Positions 19,951 through 45,001 of a DNA stretch of 64,000 nt are shown here, one piece after another. Below the pieces are notes generated by a model. It was not told where the DNA came from and did no database searches. It saw nothing but the letters and a program-made list of their open reading frames with translations. Within the stretch, counting starts at the first letter, position 1; each line of letters begins with the position of its first letter. The DNA is from Mytilus californianus (lineage: Eukaryota), in assembly GCF_021869535.1 (NCBI RefSeq), contig NW_026262712.1, forward strand, positions 53,072,001 to 53,136,000, read 5' to 3'. The position numbers and the translations under genes were made by a program.

Positions 19951-21590
19951 TGTTGTTTTAACTTTACATTTTTTAGATTTCTATGTTGTGTTTCATATAC
20001 TTTAACATTGTTTATCTTTTGTACGCATACAATTATGTGATGAGGCTTTTTATCAACTGGCATGTGTCAAATTTGTGCCGCTTAATATGCTGTAATACGC
20101 AAAAGTGCAACTTCGATCTTTAAAAATTCTGACGAAGCGGTTCCGATAGTGATTTACGAGTTGCGTATCTTTGTTGACACTTTTGAAGAACAAAGGTATT
20201 TGTACTATTATATATCAGGCTGATATCCATTTGAAGTTAAACAAAAGAAATGGAACTCTTCATTAGAGAAGGTAAAAATGGTCTTGTTGGTATATTTGAA
20301 TTGTTTAAATCGGTTTCTATGGTCTTTAAAAGTTTAATGTAGGTGCTTAAATTATGATGTTTTGCATCTTATATACATGTTTGCATTTTGTTTAAAGCAT
20401 GGAGCTTTGAGATATTTGTAAACTTTTAAACTAGAGACAAATCATTAAGTCGTTTATGCTATGTGCAAATACATGTGGATCTTTTATGTGCATAATCAAA
20501 AATTCAGATTAAAAAAAAATCCACAGAAAGATAAAAAAAAATGGTCTTTTTTAAGCAAAAAGTTGCATCTCTGCCCCCGACAACATTTTTTTTTTTTTGG
20601 GAAACAATCCTAAAAAAAAGTCAATAATCTCATCTAAAAGAGAAAGTTGGGTACACCTTTTTTGTGTTCAGGCGTGTTAGAGTTGGCTGTTTTGTCTTGA
20701 AAACGTATAAAGCAACAGTATGTGAGACCCAATCTCGCTTCCGGCTTTATTATTATTATTCATTAAGGCTACATATTTATATAATAATAATAATAATTCA
20801 CAGTACCAAAGATATATGTATATTGGTCAAGCGAAATACCTTTCTAATGAGCCATGACAACAGAGTAGGTGTGTTTAAATATCAAGTTTATAATACAAAA
20901 TAACAAAAAGCACTTGTTACAAGTGGATCTTAAAAATGCATAATTTTAAAACAAATTCTCATTTTTTGTGTATATTACCTAGTGTAATTCGTCTTCAACC
21001 TCTGAAAGTTATTAGTGTTTCCTTCCACAAAATATTCAGTTACATGTTTTTGATGTTTTTGAACTTTTGGAAATTCACCCTGACAAAAAAAGTAAAATAA
21101 CAAAAATACCGAAATGCAAGGGAAATTCAAAACGGAAAGTCCTTTATAACATGGCAAAATCAAAAGCTCAAACACATTTAACAAATGGAAAACAACTGTC
21201 ATATTCTGATCAGACAATAGTTTTAAGTTGACAAAAGGCATACAAGTAAATTACATGATGCTTAAATGCTAGTAGATAAATTTTGTCTTTTTTAAAATAT
21301 AACTGTCATGTTAGAATGGTAATGATGCTATGTGGACAAATTATCAGTTTTCAAGAGCTAAATTGACATCCCGACAATGCCTTCCATTTTCGAGATTAAA
21401 AAATAGAAAAAATAAGTTTGCGTAATAGGGAGATAATTTTGACGAAGTAGAATCCGGACTAATATATTTAGCACTTTATGATGTTAGTTACAAGTAAACA
21501 TATTTAAAAATAAGTAATTACATTTTAACTGAATATAATTGATTATATTTCTATCCTGCAGTTATACGTAAATCATTGTCGAAAACAATC

Positions 21591-23245
21591 AAGACAAATA
21601 TAATAGTATATTGACGTTGACTAATACTGAAATAAGAATAAGGCTTAGAAACAGGGAAATTCGAGACAGTATTTGCCAAATGTTCAAATCGTTTTATTTC
21701 AAGTCAATATTTTTGTTGTTGTCATATAATGAATTTTATTTGCTAATTTTCAAAAAAAGAAAAAAATGATATTAGACAGTAGGGTAGATTAATTGTTTGT
21801 TTATTGCTATATTGAAAAAAGAGGGAGTTATTTATACTGCACATGTATGATGTCTCTGCAGTGGTCATTAATGTCTGAATCCAACGGCAAGTAAGAAACA
21901 GAAAACAGATTTTTTTTTCTGAATTGCCGCCAATTAAACTTTTTCCGCGAAAAAAAACGCAACATTAGAATGGCGTGCTTAACTATCAGTCCCGTTGTTA
22001 TCTTTAGAAAGTATCAACAACGGTCGTTTCTAAATGTTTGTTTTCCGACTGATCTGGTTATTTGACATATCATTTCATATTTAGATAATTTTTCAATTAT
22101 CAGTGCTATCCCTTCCAAAAAGCTAATAAGAACAAAAACAAAACAAAACAGAACAAGCAACCAATACATACGACTTGTCATGTTGATAGTTCTGAATTCC
22201 TTATGATATGGATTGCCATATATAATAAGTCGCCTTTTGAATGCACACATCAACCTTGCACAAATAATGTTTACATCTTCCAGTCAGCCCTTAAACAATA
22301 AAGGATTATTAAGCATTCTTTAATACAATCATAAACTTTAGATTACTTTTAAATATTTTACTTCAGCATTAAAAAACACCAACTTATATAGAAATAACAT
22401 GTCAAAGACTAGACGAATACCTAATGAGCAGTTAGACATTAGATCACAACGGCTTTTAATAGAATTTCGTGTTGCTCAGTCTTTAGTTTTCAATCTTGTG
22501 TTATGTATAATGTTGTTTGTCATTTGGTTTTTTTTTTTGTGTTTTTCAATGGCGTTGTCAGTTTGTCAGACTAATGAATTTGAATATCCTTTGGTATCTT
22601 CAACCCCTCTTTTAGACCTTAAAACTGGAAAGTGTGGAATGAGAACTATCGAAAACAACCCTTTCGTCTTAAACTTTAAATAGTTCTCGTATGATCCTCG
22701 ATGCAAATTGTCGAAACGTGTGTCATTTGTATCTGTGGTAACTTTTACATTGCATTCAATGGGACGAATGTCACCACCAAACGTCAAATAACTTGCCGAG
22801 ATGACAACATATTTACCGCGGAAGGTAAAGTTAAAGGATAAAACTAGTTTCCGTTCACTACATGTATTTATGAGAAATTCTGTCTGAAGTCTGTATCATA
22901 CAAACACGAGTACAAATGCTTTTTTCGTGTATTATAACTGTAACTGTTAGGATACTGGTGAATAAAGACAAATATAATTATAGTATATTGACGTTGACTA
23001 ATACTGAAATAAGAATAAGGCTTAGAAACAGGGAAATGCGAGACTGTATTTGCCAAATTTTCAAATCGTTTTATTTCAAGTCAATATTTTTGTTGTTGTC
23101 ATATAATCAATTTTATTTGCTAATTTAAGAAAATGAATAAAATGATTTAAGACAGCAGGGTTGATTATTTCTGTTTGTTTATTGTTATACTGAATCAAGA
23201 GGGAGCTATTTGTTCTGCACATGTATGATGTCTCTGCACTGGTCA
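21591..23245 (+). repeat. ~280-bp direct repeat pair (21591-21867 and 22965-23245)
   Basis: aagacaaatataat ... gacgttgactaatactgaaataagaataaggcttagaaacagggaaat ... gcacatgtatgatgtctctgca occurs twice, roughly 85-90% identical by eye. Confidence 0.9.
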
Positions 23246-23879: not shown

Positions 23880-26534
23880 ATGATTCCAATCATGCCTCAT
23901 ATTTTCCGCAGGATTCAGAAAAAAAAGACTTTACTCTTATTTGTATGTGCGTTTATTGTACTATTTTTGTTTACTAAATTTTATCATGTTAAATATGACA
24001 ACAGAATTGCGTCTACAAACATTGCTGTGGAAGACCATATGGTAAGATCTGGAAAAACAAATATAAGTAACAGTCTGTTTAATCTTCTGAACGAACTAGA
24101 TATCACAATTCGTAAAAAAGCAACAGAGCGAACGATATACGGGAATATATACAGTGGTAAGGAGAAAGTACAAATAGAAAGTTATATATCAGCTATAAAG
24201 AATTTTACAAAAAAAAGTCCTGTAAAGACAATTTGCGAAATTGGATTTGCCGGAGGACACAGTGCAACCCTTTTCCTTTTTTTAACAGATTCCGCTAGTT
24301 ATACGGGATTTGATATGTGGAATCAACCTGTGTATGAAAACACTGCAATCGAATGGGTAAGAAAGCAATTTAATAATCGCCGAATTAAACTAATTAAAGG
24401 TGACTCTACAAAAACAGTTCCTCAATTTGAAGGTCAATGTGATATTATACATATAGATGGCGCCCACCATGCAAACTTCCCAGAAACGGATATGAAAAAC
24501 ATGGCCCGTGTTGCTTCCGTTAATAATTTATTACTGGTGGACGACTGTTCTAAATCTTGGCCTGCTGTACTAAAGGGGGTGGAATATCTGAAGACAAATG
24601 ATCTATTGAATAACATTCAAATGCATGTACCAGAGGGCTGGATCTACAGAGGCGCTAAGAAAGGGTGGTGTATAGGCAGTTATAATGTAAAATACCAAGC
24701 AGATACTATACCAAGGAATTTTACGTTTCTAAATAAAACGTTTTGTACACCGTCATGGTATGGAGACAACTGCGATGTATTTTTTTCCAAATCTTGTTCA
24801 AAACTGAGCGATCAATGTTTTTATAGTAACGTTACTGGGACCCTATCAGTATCATGTCAACGCTGGCATGGTGCACAGAACACTGAAAACATAACATGGG
24901 ATAAACGATTTACTGCCAAAGACAGGAACGATGCACATGCAAAATCATTTAATTATTATAAATCTTTACCCCAAAATTTAGGCAGTATAATTGAAATTGG
25001 CGCTGGTCCGTTCACTCAAGCACAAACAATATTACAAGGTAAGACAGCAACAAGTATTACCTTGATAGAACCAATGGCATTCCATTATATGACAAACGTG
25101 AAGCGTTGTTTCTACAAGAATGGAAGTTTCGGAAATCTTCCGACCACCATATTATCTATACCTGCGGAGGAGCTCAGTAATACACGGAAATGTGATACTT
25201 TAATCATGATTAATGTTATTGAACATGTCTATGATGCTATATCTATATTTAATGCAGCCGTTAATTTGATTAAAGAAAATGGCGTATTCATTTGGCATGA
25301 ACGAATTTGGAATAACTATCTAGGGGTTGCGAATTCTGAACACGATCGCGAATTTCAGTTGCATCCGATTCGAATCAAGCAGGTTATTGCAAAACAAGTT
25401 TTGTCTATGTTTGATGAAAACTATATTTCCTGGGACACAGAAGAATTGCGTCGAATACAAAACCATGGTGTGTATTTCATTGGTCAAAGGAGTAATATGG
25501 TTGCAAAAACGTTCATTCCACAACACCGTCCGTGTTTTGAACAGATTGGAGGCAGGCAAACAATCATATTTTTTGTTTCAAATGAAAATGCAACATTCAT
25601 TCAACTTCAACTGAAATTGGTGAACAATGCAGCTAATACCAAACTCATCGTGATAATACAGACAGATGAATTTAATGATACGGCAATATCAAATGTTCTC
25701 CAATTTTCCAAAATTCGGATATTAATTTCACATCAACATTTACGCAACTGGAGGAACGAAGTTAGTAATTATGTTGAGCCTTGCCTTTTCATTATTCCAC
25801 ATTTAACCCGAGCAATGCTAGATGGCTCCGATACTTATTGTGTCGGCAACAGTGGGGTGACAGTTATTCTAATGGGATATTCATCCAGAAGGCTGAATAA
25901 TTACGGCTTAATTTTGCCAGCATATATACATATGCCAATAATCAACCAAATAATATTTATATGGAATAACAGAAATAAATCGTTCACTCCTGAAATCGAT
26001 TCGCCAAAATTTACGTTTATAAAAGCAGAAGTTAATAGCATGAACAATCGTTTCAATGTATCACAATATGTTCATACAGATGCTGTTCTGATAATTGACG
26101 ATGATGTTTTGATTAGTGAATCCTTATTGTCATTGTTGGTATTGCGATGGAGTGAAAATATGGATAGATTAGTTGGAATAAGCAGAGACATGCGGTTTGT
26201 TAATTCAAAAAATGAATATCTTGTTCAAGGTAAAGAACCATCCTTGGTTATCGGTAAAACAATGCTTTTTCACCGCAAGTACTTACAAAAATATATTCAA
26301 GATAAAGCATTGGTAGAATGGAATGATAAACGGTTTTGCGAAGATATTTCAATGAATGCTTTAATTTTTAAGGAAACAAAATTAAAACCGCTATTTGTTC
26401 CGATGACTGCACATAGTTCACGCAGAGATCTCTCAGATATAGACGGTGCTTCTATCATAGATAAAAATTGGTCTTTACGTAGAACCGAATGTGTTCAATG
26501 GGTTGCTGGATATTTCCAAATACAATTATACTGA
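23880..26534 (+). CDS. Type II membrane protein: SAM methyltransferase (Methyltransf_24-like) + Cys-rich linker + second class I SAM methyltransferase + GT64 (EXTL2-like) glycosyltransferase; 884 aa, uninterrupted ORF
   Basis: N-terminal RRIQKKK plus hydrophobic anchor. MTase1 motifs: EIGFAGGHSA, GFD, KGDS, DIIHIDGAH, LLVDD. Linker CTPSWYGDNC. MTase2 motifs: IIEIGAGP, LIEP, DTLIMINVIEHVYD, LIKENG. GT64 motifs: VILMGY, IIFIWNN, NSMNNRF, TDAVLIIDDD, DRLVG, CEDISMN, RTECVQW...F. Confidence 0.93.
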   Translation: MIPIMPHIFRRIQKKKTLLLFVCAFIVLFLFTKFYHVKYDNRIASTNIAVEDHMVRSGKTNISNSLFNLLNELDITIRKKATERTIYGNIYSGKEKVQIESYISAIKNFTKKSPVKTICEIGFAGGHSATLFLFLTDSASYTGFDMWNQPVYENTAIEWVRKQFNNRRIKLIKGDSTKTVPQFEGQCDIIHIDGAHHANFPETDMKNMARVASVNNLLLVDDCSKSWPAVLKGVEYLKTNDLLNNIQMHVPEGWIYRGAKKGWCIGSYNVKYQADTIPRNFTFLNKTFCTPSWYGDNCDVFFSKSCSKLSDQCFYSNVTGTLSVSCQRWHGAQNTENITWDKRFTAKDRNDAHAKSFNYYKSLPQNLGSIIEIGAGPFTQAQTILQGKTATSITLIEPMAFHYMTNVKRCFYKNGSFGNLPTTILSIPAEELSNTRKCDTLIMINVIEHVYDAISIFNAAVNLIKENGVFIWHERIWNNYLGVANSEHDREFQLHPIRIKQVIAKQVLSMFDENYISWDTEELRRIQNHGVYFIGQRSNMVAKTFIPQHRPCFEQIGGRQTIIFFVSNENATFIQLQLKLVNNAANTKLIVIIQTDEFNDTAISNVLQFSKIRILISHQHLRNWRNEVSNYVEPCLFIIPHLTRAMLDGSDTYCVGNSGVTVILMGYSSRRLNNYGLILPAYIHMPIINQIIFIWNNRNKSFTPEIDSPKFTFIKAEVNSMNNRFNVSQYVHTDAVLIIDDDVLISESLLSLLVLRWSENMDRLVGISRDMRFVNSKNEYLVQGKEPSLVIGKTMLFHRKYLQKYIQDKALVEWNDKRFCEDISMNALIFKETKLKPLFVPMTAHSSRRDLSDIDGASIIDKNWSLRRTECVQWVAGYFQIQLY

Positions 26535-29500
26535 ATCAAAAGGTTGAAAAATTCAAAAGATCAATGTGTTGTTTATTATAAAATAACTCAGCGTGATAGC
26601 TTACTTCATTGTCTAGTTTTTGTGAGGTGGGGATAAGTAAAATATTGAAATAATTGTTCATATCCCTCTCTCTTTATATTTTGGTCATTTTTTTACTTGA
26701 TCATAGAAACACTAAAAATCGTTGAAATATGTTACAAAACAAATATCAAAAACTACTACATGCTATATATCAAGAAAGTTAAAATGAATGTATATTTTCA
26801 TTTTTGGTATTCAGCAAAATATTTCTTGTCTGATCCTTTTTTCCAAACCAAATGAACTGTTATAATAAGCTCATAACATTGACTATCAGCCTTTCTTCTG
26901 AACTGTACGACAAGCAGGGTAATTAAACCTCGCCTACCCGAGTCCCTGACATTGCTGGATTTTACTCTAAAGTAATTTACATACATAAAATTGAGAATGG
27001 AAATGAGGAATGTGTCAAAGAGACAACAACCCGACCATAGAGCAGACAACAGCCGAAGGCCACCAATGGATCTTCAATGCAGCGAGAAACTATTGAAGCT
27101 CTTGTCTTCAGTGTTGATTTTTTGATTTTTTGCTTTTTATTTTTTATGTGTTATTTGGAATGTTGTCATATATTTGTTTGATGTTATAATATTTTGTCGA
27201 TTTTGCATTTCTTATGTTTGCTAAAATCTTACGACGTGCAAACATAACATAAGTTGTTTTGAAGCTCCAAGCAGGGTTAGAAAAAAACAATTTTAGTATT
27301 TAAGAACTATACCGGGAAAGTATGATCTAAATTAATATTTCAAAGTTAAAATAAAATACGAGAAAGATATCTTATTACATACTAGCTAATAAAACAATAT
27401 TAATTGGGTTGTTGTACTCTTTTTTATACGTGTGCTCAAAACAAAATACAAAATGTTGTTAACTTTCAAGTAACACAATCTGTTCATAAAAACCTTATCA
27501 TTGGATAATTATTTCTATTTTAATGACTTTTTTTTTTATTTTTAATGAATAAATCCAAAGTTTTCTGTGATTAAAAAGGTTAGATAAAAAGCACATAATT
27601 ATATTATTTTATTACAAATGTCTTCATGAAAACGAAATTTGTTCAAATAAAATAGTCATAATAACTTATATAGTTATTTATTTAATGGTATATATTTTGA
27701 TCTGGTTGACAAATATTTCGTGAAAAATAAGTAATTAAGTATTCTTATAAATATTGAGGAACAATTCAATCGAAAACTAATATATATTGGCGCATTAAAT
27801 TGGAAACCACACTAAACGTGCTTAACAAATACTATTTTTCTCTTTTAAATGATATCACGGTATACAAGTATAATCATGAAAAAAAAATAAACCCTTGATG
27901 TATAATTGTTATAAAACATAATTAAGAGCATTTTCTTTTAGATTAATACACCGCACCGTTCGCATTTGGAGAACATTATTGTCAAAAGAATAAAAAAAAC
28001 ATTCAATTATTTGCAGAATCAAATGTTGAGTCTACGAATCAAACATTGTTGTTATTGAAGACAGTTCGTTACATATAATTAAGTAGACTTGCATAGACAA
28101 AAATAATAAATAAAATAGAGCACAGCCGTTGACAAAACGATGTCCAAAGCTAAAAACTCTGACACATTTCCATCTTGACGCTTCTTTAATAACATCACAA
28201 TCAAATCTGTCCACATGGCTTGCATTCAATTCAACATTTCGAATAATCTTTCATCGACATAAGGAAATGCCTGTACTAAGTCAGGACTATGACAGTTGTT
28301 TTTCATTCGTTTGATGTGTTTCAGGTTTTGATTTTGCCATTCGATAAACGATTTTCTGTTTTGAATTTTCCTTGCGTTCGGTATTTTTGTTATTTTACTT
28401 GTTTTTTTTTCAGAGCTGAAAAAATATTAACATGTAATAACGGAGTCAATTTTTTTTTTAATTTTTATTTTTGTTAATATATATAGACCAAATAAAACTC
28501 AAAATCTACCGTCTTTTTAGACTTTAAAAATGGTATTTATTTGATTTTAAGGAACATACATTCAAGTGTTCCCTTGTTCGTTATTCATTTATGAAACAGT
28601 CAAGATATTTATCTCAAGAAAAATTGCTTAAATATTCTTATGACTATTATGTGGACAAAAAACTCTATCAAGCAAAAGTAACATATTCACTATGAAATTA
28701 CGCAAGGTGACTATTTAAATTTTATCTTTAGATTTTGTGTAATAAAGAATATTCTTATAAAGTGACTTATTTCAATAATATTTCATTATTATAAAGGATA
28801 AAAAAGTGTTATAATTGAAGTAATCTTAAAACGAATAAAAAACCAGTTATATTTAATCTAGTACATATCTATGATAACTGCGATATGTTATTTTTGTAAA
28901 ACTTATATCTTTAAATTTTGTATGATAAAGAATAAGCTTAAAAATTAAACAAGAGATTTATTTCAATTTACAAACTTGTTTTTGCATTTTTCATTGTTAT
29001 TCAACGCAAAATAATTATCTAAGATACAGATACCTGGAACGATCTCATTTCATAAAGGATCGCTTTTGTTTACTTATTGTACCTCGAACTTATTAATTCG
29101 GTGTAGGTCTTTAAGTTGAGGTTCTATTTACTAAAAGTTAATCGGGCATGATGAAATTAGACACGTCCTTTTAGAATCAGGGGGTCCAAAATAGGATCGG
29201 GAAAAAACAGCCAACAAAATACCATAATTTGCTATTTCAGAGAATCAAAGTTCTTTTGGCTGATTATCTCCGGTCAATAATCAGACGGTATTTGAGTGGA
29301 AATACAAATCTGTCCGAAAAAAGAAAAGGGAGGGGGACTAATAGCTTAACCTGCGACTTTAATCATGGTTTAACTTTATTCTAGAACGGCACACGTTTTA
29401 CCTCTAGCCAACGCTCTGTCTTATTAAATTGTCACTCTAGCATTGTTAACATTTGCTTCAGATCGATCCACTTTGCATCTCGTCGTGAATATGCCTGATA

Positions 29501-30576
29501 TATTTGCCACTGGGCGTTAAGGGAGCAATCAATTAATCAGCTTCATTAAGTGATGTATAATCATTAGTCTTCAGTTGATAATTGTCTAAAATCGTTTTTT
29601 AATTTTTATATATTTGATTTTTTAAGCGAGGATTTAAATAAAAATGACATTTTTGAAGTTGCATTTACATGGATAGGTTTAAAAACGTCTATAATAGGGA
29701 ATGCTACATATGAAAAATACGTTGAATATATTTGCAAATCGATTCGGTTTTACTTGAAATAAAAGATTTATGGTGGTAACTAAACATTCAGCTAAATATT
29801 ACAAACAACTAAATAAATGTTTAGCTTTAATTCGTATTGTCAATCATACCAATGCTAAAATACAAATGTGAATGGTAAAGGGGCGACACATAATGGGATT
29901 GATTTATAATGTGATGTTTGAAGAAAAAGAATGGAATCATAATAAAATAGTGTAAGAACTTTTGATGTTTTATGATTTTCATGATTTTATTTTAGATTTT
30001 ATTCCACCAATAGCAAGAAGATCTGAAATAAACGTAAATTTTAGAATTTCTTTTCCCATTTTTCTCTTTCCATTTAATTTTAATGTTTTAACATTAAAAA
30101 AAGTAGTCCACATCAAGGGTTACATTGTATCCTATCAAGCTAAATTAGGGGAGGGGAGTAGAACAGAAAAAAAAAATGTCATTAAGTGGCAATAAGTCAT
30201 ATATTGAAGCGTACAATGATGGCGGTCTTGCCTAGGTAACAAAATTTGTTGTTTCAAGTTATTTTTATCTGGTATAGTTGTCATAAAAGCAAAAATGGAT
30301 AAAAAAAATGTTTTAAAGGGCAACAATTTATATGAGGATTCAACTTATTTTGGCCGTTTCATTTAATTGTTAGATATTGTCTTACTGTTTAGTTTTGTTA
30401 TTTAAAGTTTTCTTCATCTTCAATTGTCTTTGCAAAAGGCGCCAAATAATGTGTTAAAATCAGCCATGCGACTTATTTGAAGATATAGCTGACCTTTCTT
30501 GTGGTTTAAAGATTTAAATCATTTAACTTGTGCGTAGATCGTATTTCCCCCTCAAAGATTTATTCAAATGGTTCTG

Positions 30577-32247
30577 GCACAGAGTGTTGAACAGATAACA
30601 TGGGATAAACGTGTCACTTCCACCGATCGGAACGATGCACAAATAAAATCTATTAATTACTATAAATCTTTACCCCCGAATTTAGGCAATATCATTGAAA
30701 TTGGCGCTGATCCGTTCACCCAAGCGCAAACAATAGTAGAAGGTAAAACAGCAACAAGCATTACATTGATAGAACCAATGGCGTTCCATTACATGACAAA
30801 CGTGAAACGTTGTTTCTACAAGAATGGAAGTTTTGGAAGTCTGCATACCATGATATTATCTATACCTGCGGAGGAACTGAGTAATACACGGAAATTTGAT
30901 ACTTTGATCATGATTAATGTTATTGAACATGTCTATGACGCTATATCTATATTTAACGCAGTCATTAATTTGATTAAAGAAAATGGCGTTTTAATTTGGC
31001 ATGAACGACTTTGGAATAACTATCTAGGGGTTGCGAATTCTGGACACGATCGTGAATTTCAGTTGCATTCGATTCGAATCAAGCAGGTTATTGCAAAACA
31101 AGTTTTGTCTATGTTTGACGAAAAATATTTTTCCTGGGACACAGAAGAATTGCGTCGATTACAAAACCATGGTGTGTATTTCATTGGTCACAGGCGTAAT
31201 ACGGTTGCAAAAACGTTCGTTCCACAACACCCGCCTTGTTTTGAACAGATTGGAGGCAGGCAAACAATTATATATTTTTTTTCAAATGAAAATGCGACAT
31301 TCATTCAAGATCAACTGAAATTGGTAAACAATGCAGCAAATACAAAACTCATTGTAATAATACAGACAGATGAATTTAATAATACCGCAATATCAAATGT
31401 TCTCCAAATTCCAAAAATTCGGATATTAATTTCATATTAACACTTACACAACTGGAAGAAAGAAGTTAGTAATTATGTTGAGCCATGTCTTTTCATTATT
31501 TCACATTTAACACTGGCAATGTTAGAAGGCGTTGATACTTATTGTGTCGGCAACAGTGGGGTGACAGTTATCTTAATGGGATATTCATCAAGAAGGCTTA
31601 ATAATTACGACTTAATTTTACCAGCATATATACATATGCCGATAACTAACCAAATAATATTAATATGGAATAACAGGAATATATCGTTTACTCCTAAAAT
31701 CGATTCGCCAAAAATTACGTTTATAAAAGCGAAAGTTAACAGCATGAATAATCGTTTTAATGTATCACAATATGTTCATACAGATGCTGTTCTGATAATT
31801 GACGATGATGTTTTGATAAGTGACTCCTTATTATCATTAATGTTATTACGATGGATTAAAAATATAAATAGATTAGTTGGTATTAGCAGAGACATGCGCT
31901 TTGTTAATTCAAAAAATGAATATTTAGTTAAAGGTAAAGAACCATCCTTGGTTATAGGTAAAACAATGCTTTTTCACCGCAAGTACTTACAAAAATATAT
32001 GCAAGATAATTCATTGGTAGAATGGAATGATAAACGGTTTTGCGAAGATATTTCAATCAATGCTTTAATTTTTAAAGAAACAAAATTGAAACCTCTATTT
32101 GTACCGATGACTGCACATAGTTCACGCAGAGATCTCTCAGATATAGACGGTTCTTCTATTACATGTATTATAGACAAAAACTGGTCTATCCACAGAACAG
32201 AATGTGTTCAATGGGCTGCTGAATATTTCAAAATACAAATATCCTGA
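30577..32247 (+). pseudogene. 5'-truncated, nonsense-disrupted paralog of the MTase-MTase-GT64 gene
   Basis: Homology begins abruptly at AQSVEQITW, so the anchor and MTase1 are absent. SAM motif EIGAGP is changed to EIGADP. CAA>TAA at 31438-31440 with the frame preserved beyond it. The GT64 part is complete to TGA 32247. Confidence 0.93.
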
Positions 32248-32773
32248 ATCAAATGCTAATCAAAAAATTAAAATGTCAATGTTTAAATGTGTTGTTTTTT
32301 TTTTTAATTTTAGTTTTAAGCATTTTTCTTTAGTGTTGTTGTTTTTCATTTTATCAGTCGGTTATATCCTTGTACTTTGAATGTTTGTCCAGGTCTGTTT
32401 TCAATATGTAAAAATCCTTGTAAGTATGACGTGTGTCTGTCCCGGTCTATTATCAAGATGTGAAATTCTTTTTTCAATAGGATATGTCCTTGTGATTATG
32501 AAGTTTGTCTGTCCCGGTCTGTTTCCATTGTTCGAGGTCAATCTCTTTTGCCAAATTTTCATATCTGAAATCGACAAAATGTGTTGTTTCGTGAAGGTTG
32601 CAAGTTATGTTTCTTTCGAATATTGCGTAATTTGGAAACATGAGCTTATTCAAATGTCTTTAAGTAGTATAACAGCAAAAATGGAAGAACTTTTTATAAC
32701 ATGCCAAAAAATATTCTATATCAATGTATCTCCTAAATTCCAATAATGAGAAATATCATGAACATCACACATG

Positions 32774-32965
32774 TTTTATGCCCCCCGCCGCTAGGCGAAG
32801 AGGGCATCAAGTTTAACCCTTGACCGTCTTTCCGTCTGTCCGTCTTTTTGTCTTTCCGTTCGTCCTTCTGTCCGTCTTTCCGTATGTCCTTCCGTCCGTT
32901 TAAAAATGTATTATCACATATTATAAGCAAGCTTGAGCGTGGGCATTTGTGTCCTCAGACACATT
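32774..32965 (+). mobile_element. HINE/pearl-MgE-like non-autonomous Helentron; related minus-strand copy 56982-57226
   Basis: tttatgcccc...gggcatcaag start, (ccgt/tccg)n microsatellite, subterminal gggcat inverted repeat and 3' hairpin tgtgtc-ctca-gacaca. Confidence 0.75.
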
Positions 32966-35761
32966 ATTCTTTTATTTTAAGAAGCTGTATGCTACAAGGT
33001 TGAAAAAAAAGCTAAATTATGATGTTCGAATTATACAGCCAAAATCACAAAAGCTAAAAAATGCGAATTGTTATTCTTATTAAATAATCTTAAAAACAAC
33101 AGTAACAATTGGGTCAACGTATCCGTGTTTCAGATACATGTACATATAACAAAATATTTAATGTTGAAGCAATAAAAGCTATAACTGTAAGTACAATTAT
33201 AAGGCGATTTCTATTTCTATTTTCGATTTTTAAATGAAAATAACTTGAAATTGATGAATGAATCAAAATTTTTCTTTAAATAAAAACACTTCATACAGAA
33301 ACAATATTTAAGAACATATAAATTGTTTTAAACAAATGTGTTACTATAAACTTTATAGTATAGATTTTGAATTTGTTGACACACACAGGTTTGGTGAAAT
33401 GATAAGTAATTTGAAATTCTCAAAAACTTATCTATTGGTCAAAAAATGATATTCAATATTTTTTTTGTAATTTGGTTAATGTCAAATTATTAAGAAATAT
33501 TTAGAAAACGAATATGATTTGGATCATAAAATTTAATTAGACGCCTAAAAATATTAATTGATCTTTTTAAATGCTTACACGATATCTGTAGAGGTATACA
33601 CGTGATAAATACACAAAATTGTCACTGGAATCGATAATATATATCAAACTATCATTGATTTTCAAAATTGAATGTTGAATCTGTGTACTTTAATAGAATA
33701 TTGTTGTGTTATGCGTTTGATGCCTTATACAGTCTTATGAGGCAGAATATTAAGTAAAATTACACATGTTGTTGATTTGCACATGCTCAGAAATAATATA
33801 GAGCACATTCGATGCCAATAACGGTAAAAAGATTAACTTATTTACTATTAAACTTTTGAAACAGTTTTATTTGGCCATCACAATAAAATTTTGTCATCAT
33901 GGTTTGCTTGAAAATTAAAAAAATCTTTTCAATGTAATGTTGATGCATATTTTTTTTTCTGTGAAGCCAAAACTCGCCTCCTTAAGTTTTAAAAAGTAAG
34001 ATAAAAAGAATCTTTGATGAAATTTACAAGCTTTTCCTACTTTGTGATTTTTCTGAAAATCAATAAAATCTAAGATAAAAAATATTTCTTATGACGGTTA
34101 TGCGAATTTTAAACTTTATCACCCAGATTTACTTTAAAACCTACGCTAAAAAATATTGTCAATTTGATTCGTTCAAAAATATTATTCAGGTGCATAGCTA
34201 TAACAACTTTTATATTTTGTTTCGGTAAAAGTTATTTCCTTAAATTTTGAATAATAAGAATAGTTTATAAAAGTGAAAACAACAGGTTTATTTCAATGTA
34301 AGTTCGTGTAATTTTGTTATGTTTAAATTTGTATTAAATTTTGTGTTTTAAATATATTGCTATGATGATAACTGTATCATTTAATATATTTTAACTGCTA
34401 TCATAAATTAAATCGTGCATGATTAAGGATATTCAACAGATTATTTCAGTATAAGTTTAGGTCATTTTATTTTTTTATTTTTTTTTTTTTTGCCATTGTG
34501 TTGTCCGTTTCTTTTTTACTTATAATTGTTGAATATCCACTTTGTTTTTTCGCCTTTTTTATAGAAATCTTTGATATTTGTGTTAAAGTCTTATTCAAGT
34601 AATTATTATACGATTATCAAAATATTATTAATCAGTTCCAAGTTGACATTTCTAAGTTCCAAACTGACCTTTCAATTCTCTATTCCAAGTTGAAATTTCT
34701 CATATCCTACTTGGAACTGAGAAACGGTAAGATGGAAGTGAGAAATTCGACTTAAAAATTAGAAATGTAATGTTTGAAATTAGAGATTTTAGCAACAGCA
34801 TGAGCAAAATGTAGTCAATGCAATACTGATATAGATCATGTATACGTTCTATATATCCTATGTTTGGCAAAATATTGACTGTTTACAACTTCTGTGGAGA
34901 TCAACTTTACACAACTTCATTATTAAATCAGTTCACATGAAGCATTCAAAAACATTGACATCATAAATAGTTATTTGAATATTTGTATGTTCAAAATCAA
35001 AGCTAAATATTTGGAAATTATATATAAATAAAAACAAAAAAGGGGTATTATTCAATACGACCAAACTAAAAGCAGTTTATACTATTGTGTGGAGAGAGGC
35101 AATGGCTCTTCAGCACAAATATTCAACATACAGAAATAAACGTAGATATCCACAAGATTTCCCTCATAATGACATGCAATGGCATATCTGCTTCAGATTA
35201 TCTTCCAGTAGTACTATGCGGTTATCAGTGAACGGAGAGCATTTTTTCCTTTTTTCCTTTGACATTACAAGAAATAATCAAAGTGTGGAAGACCATGATT
35301 TGTTTATTAGTTATTATTGGCCTTGAACTATATTGTACTGTTACACCACTGTCTTCGGTAAGGGGGAGGGTTGAGCGCGCATAATCCTGTCTAACGCTGC
35401 TAGATGTTTTATATGCCGGTCAAGAACCAGAAGCGTGTAATTCAGTGGTCATTTTTCTTTTATTGTTGTTAGCATTAACCAGTCATTTCGTTTTCTTTTT
35501 TACAATTGTTTCACGATCCGTCATGCCGTGCCTTTTATGTATGGTATGGATTTGTTCATTGTTGAAGGCCATACGGTGACCAAAAGATCTCTACATCCTC
35601 GTCATTTGGTCTCTGGTGGATAGTTGCCTCTTTTGCAGTCATATCACATCTCCTTATTTTGGATATTTGTCTTTACAAGATGACAAGCTATTAATTGTCT
35701 ATAAAAGCCGTTTATAAAGGATGAATTGAGATAAGAGTCATTATTTTGCTCCTGAATTACT

Positions 35762-35974
35762 AATCACTAGCCAGTCAACACTGAGGTTGTGAGTTCGAAC
35801 CCCGCTCGTGCGGGTGCATTCGACTCCAATCTTAATTGACTAGGATTGTCAGTTTTCCTACCGAATGTCGGTGCTTTTCTCCGAGGACTCCGGCTTCCTC
35901 CACCAATTAAAACTAACCACCGCGAAATAGCACAACAGTGTTTAAAGTGGCGTTAAACACCAATCAATCAATCA
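35762..35974 (+). mobile_element. tRNA-derived SINE with V-domain-like core
   Basis: B-box gagttcgaacc, core ttttctccgaggactccggcttcctccaccaa, 3' gtggcgttaaacac(caat)n tail. Confidence 0.8.
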
Positions 35975-37500
35975 GTCATAACTGATGTGTGTAAATTTGA
36001 GGCTGTAATTATATATTAAACATATGAAAAAGAATAAATTAAGCCGACTATTAAATTTCTTTAAAAAAATCAATAAAAATACAACCACCGTGACGACAGT
36101 ATAGCTAGCTACCGAATACATTTAATTAATTTATGGTCTATGTATACGCAGTTGTATTTGAGCTGTACTTCATTTCAAGTGTTGATAACAGGTTCCTATA
36201 TAATTTTATAAGTGTCATAATTCATATTTTATGTTATTTATTCAAAACTGTTGACCTTAAATATCGTGTTTTATTGAGTAACATGAACTTTTCATGTAGT
36301 AGTGAAAGTGAGTCAAATCAAAACTGAAAATCAAAATTTATAAAAAAAATCTAAATTACGACCATGTTAAGGGAAGTGTGATTAACCACTTATGTTCCTC
36401 TATGATAATATTGCTAACGAATTATTTCAGAATAAAGCAAGTAAAACTCTACACATTTTTTCTTATGCATTTGTTGGAGATTTGAAAATTAAATAAAAGT
36501 TTATATCAGCCGATAGGATGTTATGATCATTAACACAATGTGTGTAGTTTTTGTTACGAGAAACAAAGACACATAGGCTAATATGTTACCTTCTCTCTTT
36601 AGTCCAGGCATTGGAGAAGGTGTGATAGAGCTACCATTTGGCCCTTGAATTTAAAATCACGTTTTATCAAAATCAATCAAATAAAACCCTTGAGATGTAT
36701 TTAGGTCATGCATCCATTAGATACCAATGAAAAATCAAATTTTGTCGAAAATATTTGCCATAGGCCTTTTCACACTTGAAAGGTTATGAGACTATTAAAA
36801 CTGCCAAAAATTCCTCTACCTAGCGTCTTTCGATTATACTTATATACGAGCAACCGACTTTCCTCAACACATGTTTTGCCACAATATTTTCAAAGATACA
36901 TAACATCATTTTTGGAAGATATGCATCTGCTTCATTTTACCATTAACGACTTGTATAATGCACCTCTTTAGTAATCTATGTTAATTTATGGCAGTTATGC
37001 ACTAGCACGAGCAAATTGTGTCATCTTTGATATATGTAAGTAGAATGACATGGTATAGTCACACAATGTAGATGGATTACAACAATTACGCATTCACCAA
37101 ACTTGTACAGAACTAAACAATTCAAAGTGACAAATATCAGATGAAATATATCTCGGAGTCCATAGTCTTCATCTCATATTTGATTTGCATAAAATTTAAA
37201 CAAATTGGTTCCTTGTTTCTGTTGCAAGATTTATGATATTTACATTTACTTGATTTTTGACTTATCACTATACAAACGTCAATGGTTTATACTTAGTCTA
37301 TTGTTTAAAAAATTATTAAAAGTAATACAAGGAAGATACCTACATAATTGTGGTCTTTAATTATAAAAGACTTAATGTATTTTTATCCTTTTACGATGTC
37401 TGTCGCAAATGTTCAAAAATGTAAACACTGACAAGTACTGATAGCGTTATCTTTATATCGCTCTATTGCCATTCTATATAATATGTAGTGGTGTACAAGT

Positions 37501-40146
37501 ATGACTAGGATGTTCTGTAAAATTAAAAAAAGAAATATTTTACTATTATGTGTATGTGTTATAGTTGTGCTATTTCTGTTCATTAAAACCGAACACGTTG
37601 AAATAAGACAGAAACCTAATAAAATTGAAACGTCTAAAGCAAGTATAAGTGATAATTTGTTTAATCTTCTGAATGAATTAGATATTACAATCCGTAAAAA
37701 GGCACCTGAGAAAAAGATATATGGGAATATATACAGTGGTAAAGAGAAGATGCAAATAGAAAGTTATATTTCAGCTGTACAGAATTTTACCAAAAAGTAT
37801 GAAGTAAAAACAATTTGTGAAATTGGATTTGCCGGAGGACATAGTGCAACCTTATTCCTTCGTTTGACAGACTCTGCTAGTTATATAGGATTTGATATGT
37901 GGGATCAACCTGTGTATGAGAACACTGCAATTGAATGGGTAAGACAGCAGTTTAAAAATCGTCGAATCACTCTTATTAAAGGTGATTCTACAAAAACCGT
38001 TCCCCTATTTCAAGGGAAATGTAATATTATACATATAGATGGCGCCCACCATGCACACTTCCCTAAAATGGATATGAAAAACATGGCACGAGTGGCTTCA
38101 GTAAATAATTTGTTACTGATGGACGACTGTTCGAAGTCATGGCCTGCTGTGCTGAAGGGTGTTGAATACTTGAAGACAAATGATCTATTAGATAACCTTA
38201 AAATGCATGTACCAGAAGGCTGGATCTACAGAGGTGCACAGAAAGGATGGTGTATTGGTAGTTATAAGGTTAAGAACCAAGCTAAGCATATCCCAAAGAG
38301 TTTTACGTTTCTAGATAAAACGTTTTGTACATCATCATGGCACGGACATAACTGTGAAGTTTATTCTACCAAACCTTGTTCCAAGCTGAGTGATGAATGT
38401 TTCTATAGTAACGTTACTGGTACCTTATCAGTGTCTTGTGAGCGATGGCATGGTGCACAGAGTGTTGAACAGATAACATGGGATAAACGTGTTACTGCGA
38501 CCGACCGGAACGATGCACATGCAAAATCTTTTGACTACTATAAATCTTTACCCCCGAATTTAGGCAATATCATTGAAATTGGCGCTGGTCCGTTCACTCA
38601 AGCACAGACAATAGTACAAGGTAAGACAGCAACAAGCATTACTTTGATAGAACCAATGGCGTTCCATTATATGACAAACGTGAAGCGTTGTTTCTACAAA
38701 AATGGAACTTTTGGAAATCTTCCGACCACGATATTATCTATACCGGCCGAGGAGTTAAGTAATGTACGGAAATTTGACACTTTGATAATGATCAATGTAA
38801 TTGAACATGTTTATGATGCAATATCAATTCTTAATTCAGCCATTAATCTGATCAAAGAAAATGGCTTATTTATTTGGCATGAGCGACTTTGGGATGACTA
38901 TCTAGGAGTTGCTAGTTCGGTCAATGATCGTGAATTTCAGCTTCATCCGGTTCGTATAAAGAACGTTATTGCAAAACTGGTTATGTCCATGTTTGATGAA
39001 AACTATATTTCTTGGGACACAGAGGAATTGCGCCGATTGAAAAATCAGGGCGTTTATTTTATTGGCCGCAAGCGTAAAATTATTGCAAAAACAAAAGTCC
39101 CACAACACCCGCCATGTTTCGAAGGAGGTCATGGTACACAAAGTGTAATATTCTTTCTTTCAAATACAAATTCCACAGAAAAAATATTTCAAGATCAACT
39201 GATGTTGGTTAACAATGCAGCTAATACCAAAACTATCGTTATTATACAGACGGACAAATTTAATAATACAGCTATAACAAATCTTCTCAAATTTAGTAAA
39301 ATTCGGATATTAATTTCATATCAACATTTACAAAATTGGAGGAAAGAAGTCAGTCACTACGTTAAACCTTGCTTCTTTATTCTTCCGTATCTTACATTGG
39401 AAATGTTAAAAAGCTCTACGACTCATTGTGTCGGCAGCAGTAGAGGTCACGTGTCTGTTGTTCTCATGGGATACTCATCTAAAAGGTTTTCAAATTATAA
39501 CGCAATTTTACCAGCATATACAAATATGGAAATAATTGACCAAATAATATTGATATGGAACAATAAATATGAACCGTTTATTCCCAAATTAAATTTGACA
39601 AAAATCACGTTCATTAAAGCGAAAGTTAACAGCATGAATAATCGTTTTAACGTGTCTCATTTTGTTCATACAGACGCCGTTTTGATCATTGATGACGATG
39701 TTTTAATGGGTGAATCTTTGTTATTATTAATGTTATTAGAATGGAAAGAAAATACTGATAGACTAGTGGGTCTCAGCAGAGACATGCGCTTTGTGAATTC
39801 AAAAAATGAATATCTTAGTCATGGTAAAGATCCATCATTAACTATCGGAAAAACCATGCTTTTTCATCGCAAGTATTTAGAAAAGTACATGCGAGATGAA
39901 GTGTTGGTAGAATGGAATAAAAATCGGTTTTGCGAAGATATTTCAATGAATGTTCTAATCTTCAAAGAGACAAATTTAAAACCGTTGTTTATAGATATGA
40001 CTGCAACTAGTACGCGTAGAGATCTATCAGAAATAGATGGTGCTTCTATTGTAGACAAAAACTGGGCCATACACAGGACAGAATGTGTTCAATGGATTTC
40101 TGAATATTTCAATGTCCAATTATATGGAAACAGAAGCTTAGTTTAG
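37501..40146 (+). CDS. Second intact MTase-MTase-GT64 type II membrane protein; 881 aa, uninterrupted ORF
   Basis: Colinear with 23880-26534 with every listed motif retained (EIGFAGGHSA, IHIDGAH, MDDC, EIGAGP, NVIEHV, NSMNNRF, IIDDD, CEDISMN). KIKKR plus hydrophobic anchor. Many synonymous differences and only in-frame indels. Confidence 0.93.
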   Translation: MTRMFCKIKKRNILLLCVCVIVVLFLFIKTEHVEIRQKPNKIETSKASISDNLFNLLNELDITIRKKAPEKKIYGNIYSGKEKMQIESYISAVQNFTKKYEVKTICEIGFAGGHSATLFLRLTDSASYIGFDMWDQPVYENTAIEWVRQQFKNRRITLIKGDSTKTVPLFQGKCNIIHIDGAHHAHFPKMDMKNMARVASVNNLLLMDDCSKSWPAVLKGVEYLKTNDLLDNLKMHVPEGWIYRGAQKGWCIGSYKVKNQAKHIPKSFTFLDKTFCTSSWHGHNCEVYSTKPCSKLSDECFYSNVTGTLSVSCERWHGAQSVEQITWDKRVTATDRNDAHAKSFDYYKSLPPNLGNIIEIGAGPFTQAQTIVQGKTATSITLIEPMAFHYMTNVKRCFYKNGTFGNLPTTILSIPAEELSNVRKFDTLIMINVIEHVYDAISILNSAINLIKENGLFIWHERLWDDYLGVASSVNDREFQLHPVRIKNVIAKLVMSMFDENYISWDTEELRRLKNQGVYFIGRKRKIIAKTKVPQHPPCFEGGHGTQSVIFFLSNTNSTEKIFQDQLMLVNNAANTKTIVIIQTDKFNNTAITNLLKFSKIRILISYQHLQNWRKEVSHYVKPCFFILPYLTLEMLKSSTTHCVGSSRGHVSVVLMGYSSKRFSNYNAILPAYTNMEIIDQIILIWNNKYEPFIPKLNLTKITFIKAKVNSMNNRFNVSHFVHTDAVLIIDDDVLMGESLLLLMLLEWKENTDRLVGLSRDMRFVNSKNEYLSHGKDPSLTIGKTMLFHRKYLEKYMRDEVLVEWNKNRFCEDISMNVLIFKETNLKPLFIDMTATSTRRDLSEIDGASIVDKNWAIHRTECVQWISEYFNVQLYGNRSLV

Positions 40147-42173: not shown

Positions 42174-45001
42174 TACGGCATGATCTATAACAAAACAAAA
42201 CGAAAAGAAAAGAAAATATAGACAGCAAACACAACAACCAATGAAAAACAGGCTGGCACATAAACAATGTGGCGGGGATAAACATGTTTGTGGGCGTTCA
42301 ACTCTCCCCTAACCTGGAAAGTGTTGTAATAGAACAACATCAGAACAAACTGTAAAAATCAGTTGGAAATGATTTGATCCGTCAGATTGGCGCTTAGCAC
42401 AAAAACAACTGACATTAAACAAAAGACACAGAGAGTCCAATTTAAGAATACTTACAGTTACTGGAAACAGACAATTATAACTAATAAATAAATCATTCTT
42501 TCTCAGACTAAACATATTAGTTTAAAGAATTAAAGCATTGCTTCCTACACTCATATATCTGCGATAGTACTTCTGAATAGATTTCATATCAGTGAATATG
42601 TTGAAAATCTTACATAAAACAATTAAAAACCGTGTGATGCCGTTTAAAAATAATTAATCCAGTTTATTTTGAACGTACATTATAAGTCATATGTTAAGAC
42701 TTGACCAAAAGAAACCATATCCAATTGTCAGTTAAATTGTAAAACAAATTATGATTTATTATATGAACATTATATGCAAAAACTGATATCAGTAATCAAA
42801 ATCCGCACGAATATTACCCATAGGGTTTCCCTTCAAGTCAGTTGTTGTCTCATCTTTTATATTGTCGGTTGTCATCTAGGGAACCGAAAACTGATGTAAA
42901 GATAAGTAGATGTGTTGTGATGATTGCCAATGAGACTTATATCCCCCAGTGGCTAAGGACCAGAATATAAGAAATTTGATAGTCTGTTTAAATGTGTTCA
43001 ACATTTCTTGTTTAGTTTTGCACTATATAGCGCTTTTGCATAATGTATACATCTTGACTAGTTGTTGAAGTTTTTCAGGGAAATGATTTCTACAGCAAAA
43101 AAAAACAGTTGATTGTGTCATATTTAATTTATTCAATGTAAATTGTACAAGCTTAAGTTTTCCTATACAAATAAATCGTTTGAACAACACTCAATCTATC
43201 AACCAATCAAACGTTCGCTACACGTGTGTATATATTACCTAAGGACCTCTTTATGTGTTTGTGTCGTTTGGTAGCTGTCTCATTGATTTATACTATTCGT
43301 CGTCTTTATTTCATATTTTCATAATATATATCTCCACTCCAACATATTTATTTTTATCCTACATTGTCTGGTTTAGTATAAGGGCTCACAGAGTGGTCAT
43401 AAATACTTTTTTGTGCAATTGAAAACTCATATAGTAGGTAACATCAGGTTTAGGAAATTAAAATCAAATAGAATCAACCACCAGATATTGGATTTGCGTT
43501 GATAAATCAACTGTTCATATAGTTTCTAGCTTGAAATTGTCGTATATTCTGCATGTGTGTTTTTTTTTTTTTAAGTACGGCATGATCTATATATAACAAA
43601 ACATTAAACGAAAAGAAAATATATATAGCAAACAACAACAACCACTGCAAAACAGGGTGGCACATATAGAATGTGGCGGGGATACACATGTTTGTGAGCG
43701 TTCAACTCTCACCTAAACTTGGAAAGTGTTGTAATAGAACAGCATCAGAACAAACTGTAAAAATCAGTTGGAAATGATTTGACTCATCAGATTGGCACAA
43801 AGCACAAAAAACAACTAACATAAAAACAAAAGACACAAGAGTGTCCAATCTAAGAATACTTACAGTTACTGGAACCACAATTATAACTAATAAATAAATC
43901 ATTCTTTCTCAGACTAAACATGTCAGTGTAAAGAATTAAAGCATTGCTTCCTACACTCATATATCTGCGACAGTACTTCTGAATAGATTTCATATCAGTG
44001 AAAATGTTGAAAATCTTACATAAAACAATTAAAAACCGTGTCATGCCGTTTAAAACTTAATCATCCAGTTTATTTTGAACGTACATTATAAGTCATATGT
44101 TAAAACTTGACCAAAAGAAACCATATACAATTGTCAGTTAAATTGTAAAACAAATTATGATTTATTATATGAACATTATATGCAAAAACTGATATCAGTA
44201 ATCAAATCTGCACGAATATTACCCATAGGGTTTCCCTTCAAGTCAGTTGTTGTCTCAGCTTTTGTATTGTCGGTTGTCATCTAAGGAACCGGAAACTGAT
44301 GTAAAGATACGTAGATGTGTTGTGATGATTGCCAATGAGACTTATATCCCCCAGTGGCCAAGAACGAGAATGTAAGAAATTTGATAGTCTGTTTAAATGT
44401 GTTCAACATGCCTTGTTTAGTCTTGGACTATTTAGCACTTTTATATAATGGATATACACTTGACTTTTCTTCAAGTATTCAAATTTCAGGAATATGATTT
44501 CTACAGCAAAAACAAGCAATACAGTTGATAGTGTCATATTTAATTAATTCAATGTAACTTGTACCAGCTTAAGGTTTCAGATACAAATAAATCGTGCATG
44601 TGAACACCAATATATCTATCAACCAATCAAACGTTCGTTACACGTGCATATGCATTATCTAAGGACCTCTATAGGTCTTAAAGTTTTTAGTGTCGTTGGG
44701 TTGCTGTCTCAATGATTTATACTCTTAGTCGTCTTTATGTCATATTTAAATAATATATATCTCCAGCATATTTATTTTTATCCTACATTGTCTTGTTGAT
44801 GATAATTACAGGCTTGTAGAGTGGTCATAAATAACTTTTTTCTTTTTGCAATTGAAAACTGATATAGTAGGTAACATCAGGTTTAGTAAATGATAATCAA
44901 ATAGAATCGACCACTAGATATTGGATTTTTGTTAATAGTTCTCTTCTTAATATAGATTCTATCTTAAAATTGCCATATGTTCTGTACGTTTTTAAAAAGT
45001 A
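42174..45001 (+). repeat. Tandem duplication of a ~1.4-kb unit (42174-43575 and 43576-~45001)
   Basis: Both units start tacggcatgatctata and are colinear throughout, e.g. ttagactaaacat...gcattgcttcctacactcatatatctgcga. Roughly 85-90% identical by eye. Confidence 0.92.

Follow-up and report, generated by a model that had tools for sequence, protein, structure and literature searches.

O-methylated sugars are a hallmark of the glycans of molluscs, nematodes, and other invertebrates and are targets of innate-immune lectins. Enzymes in which glycosyltransferases are fused to a methyltransferase are already known from giant viruses. In the chlorovirus PBCV-1, the two glycosyltransferases and one methyltransferase of the protein A064R assemble a terminal rhamnose and methylate it at the 2-O position; a second methyl group is put on the A064R product by A061L (PMC9614988). 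Here, we describe a locus of the mussel Mytilus californianus, located within 64,000 nucleotides of contig NW_026262712.1 (positions 53,072,001 to 53,136,000, forward strand; this whole stretch is called the window, and coordinates below are counted from its first letter). The locus encodes proteins predicted to combine, behind one membrane anchor, two S-adenosylmethionine (SAM)-dependent methyltransferase domains, MT1 and MT2, with a GT64 glycosyltransferase domain, and the gene family to which it belongs was probably acquired horizontally.

The mussel proteins resemble A064R, whose domains work in turn on one glycan terminus, in placing glycosyltransferase and SAM methyltransferase domains in one polypeptide, in a giant-virus origin (for the mussel proteins, a probable origin in giant viruses or algae), and in the proposed addition of a second methyl group by a second methyltransferase. 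A064R differs in having two glycosyltransferases (one GT-A and one of a new family), a single methyltransferase, and no GT64 domain, and it is not known to be membrane-anchored, whereas the mussel protein joins a single GT64 domain to two methyltransferases and is encoded in an animal genome; the two are likened by domain composition, not by sequence homology. Plant GINT1 and GMT1 are GT64 glycosyltransferases. The mussel domain shares PF09258 (102-107 bits) with the C-terminal domains of EXT1 and EXT2 and with EXTL2 and EXTL3, and its motifs align with those of human EXT2, but the mussel protein lacks GT47 and carries two methyltransferases in the same chain; its GT64 domain reaches only 59 bits in the comparison with EXT2 and has its nearest relatives in algae and viruses. 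MT1 shares its fold with COMT, CCoAOMT, PaMTH1, MycF/TylF/NovP, SpnH, and MeT1 at 10-21% identity, from which it is set apart by a GGHS motif and by invariant H196 and D204 residues that are particular to the mussel-type family. In addition, the MT1-containing protein is predicted to be lumenal and membrane-anchored, whereas the COMT/TylF-type enzymes are soluble and cytosolic.

Abundant O-methylated N-acetylgalactosamine (GalNAc), fucose (Fuc), mannose (Man), and galactose (Gal) are found in oysters and snails (PMC10301044; PMC8699351). According to reviews, the M. edulis extrapallial protein bears antennae with 4-O-methyl-glucuronic acid (4-O-methyl-GlcA) and N-acetylglucosamine (GlcNAc) branched on fucose (PMC9300197; PMC8699351). 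In C. elegans, the glycan methyltransferases were said in 2023 to "remain to be identified," and a Golgi SAM transporter, samt-1, is known genetically in this animal only (PMC7614267). Searches of the literature did not turn up an MT-MT-GT64 protein from any animal, alga, or virus. An earlier note on this DNA (made by a reader with only the sequence) had proposed a candidate new system, and we found no publication in which the architecture is characterized. What appears new is a GT64-based, two-methyltransferase version of the fused enzymes, its spread in marine giant viruses and the green-algal genus Tetraselmis, and an expanded animal family that is under selection.

The Mytilus gene cluster and the domains it encodes

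The window contains three copies of the gene, all on the forward strand.

Copy A, 23880..26534, + strand: single-exon intact open reading frame (ORF) of 884 aa, in the order anchor-MT1-Cys-rich module-MT2-linker-GT64 (ORF list and Pfam)
Copy B, 30577..32247, + strand: pseudogene, 5'-truncated, with MT2-linker-GT64 only and an in-frame TAA at 31438-31440
Copy C, 37501..40146, + strand: single-exon intact ORF of 881 aa, architecture as in copy A (ORF list and Pfam)

The two intact ORFs of ~880 aa announced by the earlier note are present, at 884 and 881 aa, and ORFs of 2.65 kb in DNA of ~31% G+C cannot have arisen by chance. Copy C is 75% identical to copy A, which is itself 95% identical to an M. 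coruscus protein misnamed "EXT2" (A0A6J8EBV9). Copy B (30577-32241) aligns in a single frame with residues 332-883 of copy A at 86% identity (tblastn) and lacks MT1 and the Cys-rich part; its nucleotide similarity begins at 30577-30588, with none upstream. Because this upstream part is missing and the frame is interrupted by the TAA at 31438, copy B is a truncated pseudogene. Coding G+C is ~36%, close to that of the host, and the flanking DNA is AT-rich. Among the copies, nucleotide similarity stops at the limits of the coding sequence. Carriage of the copies by a transposon was considered and rejected, as there are no terminal inverted repeats and no shared flanks, the similarity between copies being confined to the coding sequence.

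To describe selection since duplication, copies A and C were compared. The ratio of nonsynonymous to synonymous substitution rates (dN/dS) is 0.19 overall, at a synonymous divergence (dS) of 0.75, with values of 0.12 for MT1, 0.17 for MT2, 0.175 for GT64, and 0.25 for the linker. The ratios of 0.12-0.175 at this dS show that purifying selection has acted on each of the three catalytic domains since duplication inside the mussel genome. M. coruscus, M. galloprovincialis, M. edulis, M. trossulus, and M. californianus each carry several family members. Based on the tandem paralogues and pseudogene in AT-rich DNA, together with homologues on megabase (Mb)- to chromosome-scale scaffolds of these five Mytilus species (RefSeq models included), the genes are integrated in the host genome, and contamination is very improbable. 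Family members are annotated as "uncharacterized protein," "EXT2," or "EXTL3"; the last two labels are misleading and need correcting in public records.

Two Logan contigs (SRR29152243 and SRR29152241) encode an intact 868-aa family member whose 3' flank matches the DNA downstream of copy B. These contigs are 85% identical to window positions 30577-32873, so that the counterpart of copy B may be intact in another mussel genome.

The domains of copy A are as follows.

Signal anchor, 23928..23984, + strand: aa 17-35, behind the basic cytoplasmic tail RRIQKKK
MT1, 24060..24704, + strand: aa 61-275, class I O-methyltransferase of the cation-dependent type by prediction; PF13578
Cys-rich EGF-like module, 24705..24869, + strand: aa 276-330, preceding MT2
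MT2, 24870..25514, + strand: aa 331-545, predicted class I SAM-dependent methyltransferase; PF13489
Linker, 25515..25844, + strand: aa 546-655, 110 residues, found in the mussel clade and its closest relatives only
GT64 domain, 25845..26531, + strand: aa 656-884; PF09258

In copy A, Pfam identifies PF13578 (Methyltransf_24) at aa 120-223 (E 2.4e-15, 57.7 bits, cut-off 26.3), PF13489 (Methyltransf_23) at aa 366-494 (E 3e-6), and PF09258 (Glyco_transf_64) at aa 661-879 (E 3.7e-29). In copy C, the same three families match aa 107-210, 352-466 (30.8 bits), and 653-871, respectively. These are exactly the domains that the earlier note had predicted, and the motifs it quoted for each of them are all present and conserved across the family alignments. 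Other searches with the window proteins gave little: there was no meaningful match in NCBIfam, only weak leads in a protein atlas (scores of at most 0.85), and no record in an exact-sequence look-up for either window protein or for the relative P0014.

The type II anchor proposed earlier is seen as a basic tail followed by a single 19-residue hydrophobic stretch. The highest 19-residue Kyte-Doolittle window of copy A reaches 2.29 at aa 17 (the range among copies is 2.3-2.7), and no second comparable stretch was detected in the proteins with windows of this length. The intact proteins contain 8-12 N-glycosylation sequons and 17-18 Cys residues. Four of these Cys residues (C289, C298, C306, and C313) belong to the Cys-rich module and are almost invariant, being kept in 32-37 of 33-39 rows; the module is modeled as small beta strands with a predicted local distance difference test (pLDDT) score of >94, and the homologous stretch of the relative P0165 matches EGF_Teneurin (E 1.9e-7). 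Most full-length relatives, viral ones included, also have a hydrophobic anchor at the N terminus. Taken together, the signal anchor, sequons, Cys content, conserved module, anchored relatives, and EGF match predict a type II protein with a short cytoplasmic tail, one N-terminal signal anchor, and a lumenal catalytic region.

The AlphaFold and Foldseek analyses upheld the methyltransferase folds of MT1 (pLDDT 91) and MT2 (pLDDT 94). The MT1 model aligns over ~190 residues at Z 17-19 (VIA-align) with COMT, CCoAOMT-like enzymes, PFOMT, MycF, SpnH, and MeT1, with individual values of 19.3 for Streptomyces COMT, 19.1 for Rv0187, 18.2 for MycF, and 17.8 for SpnH. Its conserved motifs are E120/G122/G126/H127, D175-S176, D193-G194, H196, D204, and D221-D222; in the family alignment, D193, D221, and D222 are conserved in 35-36 of 36 rows, as are E120, G122, G126, H127, H196, and D204. 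In the model, D193 follows strand 133-138 (strand 4) and D221/D222 lie at the end of strand 158-167 (strand 5), which would put them at the topological places of the metal ligands in the cation-dependent O-methyltransferase fold. We take this D...DD pattern after strands 4 and 5 to be that of the TylF/NovP type. The likeness to TylF/MycF/NovP drawn in the earlier note holds for the fold, as the MycF comparison indicates, and not for the family: there is no PF05711 match (E up to 1), MycF and SpnH are no closer than COMT-type enzymes, and membership of MT1 in the TylF family was rejected.

MT2 is modeled as a class I methyltransferase fold, with Foldseek matches to NodS (template modeling score 0.7, normalized by hit length), UbiG, BioC, and CmoB. 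The residues E372-x-G-x-G376-P377 are invariant, and E/D397 and N445-x-x-E448-H449-V450 are conserved. MT2 thus has the profile match, the GxGxG-type SAM motif, and the acidic residue after strand 2 of class I SAM-dependent enzymes. The linker that follows has no Pfam match and belongs to no recognized family; it is found at 30-36% identity in the relatives P0020, P0022, and P0029 and is absent between MT2 and GT64 of Tetraselmis.

The GT64 domains score 102.2 and 106.8 bits against their profile (cut-off 21.3) and span profile positions 2-229 of 245. When aligned to the catalytically active domain of human EXT2, the NNRF, DDD, CEDI-MN, and C-terminal R-x-x-C motifs are all matched, the corresponding residues being N719/N723/R724, D740-D741-D742, C820-E821-D822, and R868. 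Across 36 relatives these motifs vary little or not at all, and D740, D741, D822, R724, and R868 are the same in all of the 34-36 rows compared.

Relatives in algae and giant viruses

Protein searches covered 5.8 billion non-redundant proteins, and the statements on distribution below cover named genomes. Among these, the full MT1-MT2-GT64 architecture was found in Mytilus only. At E<1e-30, an exhaustive HMMER search returned 72 representatives, a number that rises to 780 at E<1e-10. The best non-mussel matches are large multi-domain proteins whose methyltransferase domains are 45-60% identical to the mussel ones and whose GT64 domains are 32-39% identical. Two Tetraselmis striata proteins belong to one cluster of relatives; among named GT64 relatives, the best comes from Tetraselmis sp. 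GSL018. Further relatives are encoded on Tara/ENA contigs, where intron-free genes are densely packed on both strands. The genes on these contigs (Arf/Ras, Snf7, PI3K-FYVE, RING, and EF-hand together with HNH, MutS_I, endonuclease VII, NeuB/cytidine monophosphate (CMP)-sugar synthetase, and GH125) make up a giant-virus-like content. Bacterial and archaeal genomes gave partial MT1 matches only, at 24-38% identity (best bacterial, 35-38%).

Viral contigs were also scanned directly. A single protein as query gave no match in them, and alignments of MT1 or MT2 were needed. In IMG/VR, the MT2 alignment matched 11 viral loci, which lie on contigs 32-408 kb long, and the MT1 alignment identified 425 loci that encode relatives, many of them labelled GVMAG. 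The best locus (L007 7556-10981, UViG 3300020185_000009, 179 kb) encodes a protein of 1142 aa in which an unassigned N-terminal region of 355 aa is followed by GT64-MT1-MT2, and whose MT2 segment is identical to the metagenomic protein P0017. Domain mapping of the relatives identified at least seven orders that join MT1, MT2, and GT64.

MT1-MT2-GT64: mussels
MT1-MT1-MT2-GT64: Tetraselmis
X-GT64-MT2-MT1: viral
X-GT64-MT1-MT2: viral
X-GT64-MT1: other relatives
MT2-MT1-GT64: other relatives
MT1-GT64 and MT2-GT64: other relatives

Here, X is a GT31, nucleoside diphosphate (NDP)-sugar epimerase/dehydratase, Nucleotid_trans, GT7-like, or DUF273 domain. The fusions of Tetraselmis and marine giant viruses are homologous to the mussel proteins in each of the three domains and likewise have N-terminal anchors and a Cys-rich module; they differ in domain order, in extra N-terminal glycosyltransferase or NDP-sugar domains, and in lacking the linker of the mussel clade. 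These data point to a large, uncharacterized MT-MT-GT64 fusion family shared by Tetraselmis and marine giant viruses. They also do not sit with the earlier note's picture of a general animal Golgi enzyme, as the family is restricted to Mytilus and its nearest kin are giant-virus and Tetraselmis proteins.

Several neighborhoods of these genes were recorded. Next to the gene for the 1142-aa viral protein are genes for a Stealth-CR2-like protein, a SET-domain protein, a Ser/Thr kinase, and an SNF2-RING helicase, and a related contig (L001) carries a separate TylF-type methyltransferase gene ~4 kb upstream. On a Tara scaffold (L006 3548-7750), the 1400-aa protein P0028 combines a GT31 galactosyltransferase, an NDP-sugar epimerase/dehydratase, GT64, and MT1. 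The neighbors of its gene code for an EamA transporter and a NeuB/CMP-sugar synthetase, and by gene content the locus looks like a compact viral glycan-synthesis island.

Two groups of animal or possibly animal sequences were also found. Bdelloid rotifers (Rotaria and Didymodactylos; P0171-P0173 and P0179) have standalone MT2-type methyltransferases of a distant subfamily, which cluster tightly with proteins of 212-260 aa from JGI, ENA, and NCBI records and probably represent a separate acquisition. Separately, the contig ENA ERZ25067879 (L018 7277-8440), which is gene-sparse and has 33% G+C, encodes a piece with the Cys-rich module, MT2, and linker that is 49% identical to the mussel protein. 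This contig may derive from another bivalve or animal, in which case it bears on the age of the acquisition.

Unrooted trees were built for each domain from rows that are mostly metagenomic (MT2, 143 rows, quick tree search; MT1, 97 rows; GT64, 36 rows, careful tree search). In the MT2 tree, the mussel clade and a few metagenomic sequences fall in one clade with the giant-virus fusions (Shimodaira-Hasegawa-like approximate likelihood ratio test (SH-aLRT) support 95), this lies inside a clade with Tetraselmis (SH-aLRT 98), and the rotifer proteins are far off. In the MT1 tree, mussels, viral fusions, and Tetraselmis form a set (support 96) that is separate from the remaining 40 viral sequences and from 13 bacterial ones. 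The GT64 tree joins the mussel clade to that of Tetraselmis as its sister, with weak support (81/88), and places the viral clade near. When the mussel GT64 domain was compared with human proteins by phmmer, EXT2 scored 59 bits (E 2e-15), EXTL3 48, and EXTL2 43, and many algal or metagenomic GT64 domains scored 100-180 bits. From this difference, the mussel domain does not appear to be a recent offshoot of the animal's own exostosins.

The patchy distribution of the family and the nesting of the mussel sequences among non-animal ones are the pattern of a horizontal transfer, and the family was probably acquired in this way. The donor and the direction are suggested by the nested, shallow mussel clade and by the far greater diversity of sequence and architecture outside mussels. 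Such a history would mean the likely transfer of a whole multi-enzyme glycan-decoration module from a giant-virus/algal gene pool to an animal, followed by expansion under selection.

Proposed activity and competing explanations

Based on the above results, we consider it reasonably probable that the Mytilus proteins are horizontally acquired, domesticated, and tandemly expanded lumenal enzymes in which GT64 adds a sugar and MT1 and MT2 methylate the product or its neighbors. In this proposal, the locus would be one tandem cluster, of two intact genes and one truncated pseudogene, within a Mytilus-only multigene family. The source would be a marine alga or a giant virus of algae, where the modules were repeatedly fused in varied orders, and domestication in mussels would have been followed by duplication and retention under purifying selection. 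The encoded proteins would be membrane-anchored and lumen-facing, with three enzymes in one chain. In the secretory pathway, the DDD/Mn2+ site of GT64, a retaining-type glycosyltransferase, would transfer an alpha-linked sugar from a nucleotide sugar to a glycoprotein or glycolipid glycan; with SAM from the lumen, MT1 and MT2 would next methylate the added sugar or its neighbors at up to two positions, and the product would be a lineage-specific methylated cap. The analysis shows the architecture, the conserved catalytic motifs, the folds, the selection, the taxonomic distribution, and the placement in the trees; we infer expression, the Golgi location, the glycan substrates, the donor sugar, and that MT2 methylates O rather than N. 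The N-acetylhexosamine (HexNAc) donor and sugar O-methylation are likewise inferences. That one polypeptide both builds and methylates a glycan has indirect support, since the recurrent rearranged fusions, the fusion to other sugar-pathway enzymes, and the A064R precedent all suggest that the three activities are functionally coupled.

A more specific version of this proposal is offered tentatively, with less than even confidence. In it, the Mytilus proteins would be the first molecularly identifiable animal glycan O-methyltransferases, captured already fused to a glycosyltransferase from a giant virus or alga, and would make Mytilus-specific methylated caps such as the antennae of the M. edulis extrapallial protein. 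If true, a viral or algal glycan-decoration module has been repurposed for animal shell-fluid or surface glycoproteins; to name the 4-O-methyl-GlcA/GlcNAc fucose antennae as the product is speculation. The earlier note had set these enzymes beside the O-methylated glycans of molluscs. They cannot account for such glycans in molluscs generally, because oysters and snails methylate their glycans and no named homologue was found in them. The genes provide cloneable candidates for animal glycan methyltransferases, though for one genus only.

A number of observations weigh against the proposed origin and activity. Regarding activity, the PF13489 match of copy A is borderline (27.5 bits against a cut-off of 27). 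The fold matches of MT1 and MT2 are generic (a plateau at Z 17-19) and, at the level of the models, identify no sugar substrate; searches against Swiss-Prot models likewise gave only generic methyltransferase matches for both domains. The best matches of MT2 include N-methyltransferases (NodS) and lipid or quinone methyltransferases, and the Logan contigs with complete ORFs (2.7-4.2 kb) show no poly(A) tail and no evidence of splicing. Regarding origin, the GT64 placement is weakly supported and the GT64 tree includes no animal EXT sequence, the donor lineage and direction of transfer are read from unrooted trees, and the Tetraselmis copies could themselves be viral insertions. The "non-animal" status of the mostly metagenomic relatives is judged from contig context, IMG/VR membership, and one algal genus.

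The activity could be otherwise in a real lumenal enzyme, if one or both methyltransferases act on a non-glycan (a protein, a small phenolic or catechol compound, the head group of a lipid, or a nucleotide sugar that has yet to be transferred) or if MT2 is an N-methyltransferase. The fold of MT1, which is as near to catechol and CCoA O-methyltransferases as to sugar O-methyltransferases, agrees with this explanation, as do the best matches of MT2 (UbiG, the N-methyltransferase NodS, BioC, CmoB, and phosphatidylethanolamine N-methyltransferase) and the heavy use that mussels make of catechol (DOPA) chemistry. We regard it as unlikely, given that the modules are persistently joined with GT64 and with other glycosyltransferase or NDP-sugar domains in many rearranged architectures, that A064R provides a precedent, and that NodS itself acts on an oligosaccharide.

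The proposal of horizontal acquisition was also set against two other histories. In one, the gene is an ancient, vertically inherited animal gene that was lost nearly everywhere else, and viruses and algae took it from animals or all received it from a eukaryotic ancestor. GT64 is indeed an ancient eukaryotic family, and some metagenomic relatives, the L018 contig perhaps among them, could be animal. This history is nonetheless improbable, as the full architecture occurs in no named animal outside Mytilus despite the many annotated mollusc proteomes searched, the genes have no introns, the viral and algal sequences and architectures that surround the shallow mussel clade are far more diverse than it is, and the animal EXT proteins are much more distant. 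In addition, a single clade of mussel and rotifer MT2 sequences is rejected by the approximately unbiased (AU) test (p 3e-5), MT2 being the sole domain tested and the sole one present in rotifers; this group was defined with the tree already known, which lessens the weight of this result for a foreign origin. In the other history, the copies are dead remnants of an endogenous viral element, or algal or viral contamination of the assembly. Copy B is a pseudogene, and bivalve genomes accumulate viral regions (bioRxiv 10.1101/2025.04.19.649669), yet two ORFs are intact, and a dS of 0.75 at a dN/dS of 0.19 has built up between tandem paralogues within the host. Homologues on large scaffolds of all five Mytilus species, the AT-rich flanks, the near-host G+C of the coding sequence, and five smaller window ORFs with no significant match in Pfam also argue against remnants or contamination, which we consider very improbable.

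Other features of the window

No further ORF of at least 150 aa is listed in the window (compare the 199-aa ORF inside the repeat cluster at 59.2-59.8 kb). This cluster of overlapping ORFs, which lies in the most G+C-rich part of the window, exists because of a 62-nt tandem repeat at 59325-59781 (7.4 copies, 92% match). The 199-aa ORF in the repeat region has a sub-threshold match to an apextrin C-terminal domain (E 7e-4). Two direct-repeat pairs, each with a spacing of ~1.4 kb, lie upstream of copy A (21587-21867 and 22961-23245) and downstream of copy C (42192-42594 and 43595-44000). They are unrelated to the genes and may be dispersed or tandem mussel repeats, and identity within both pairs is 83-97%.

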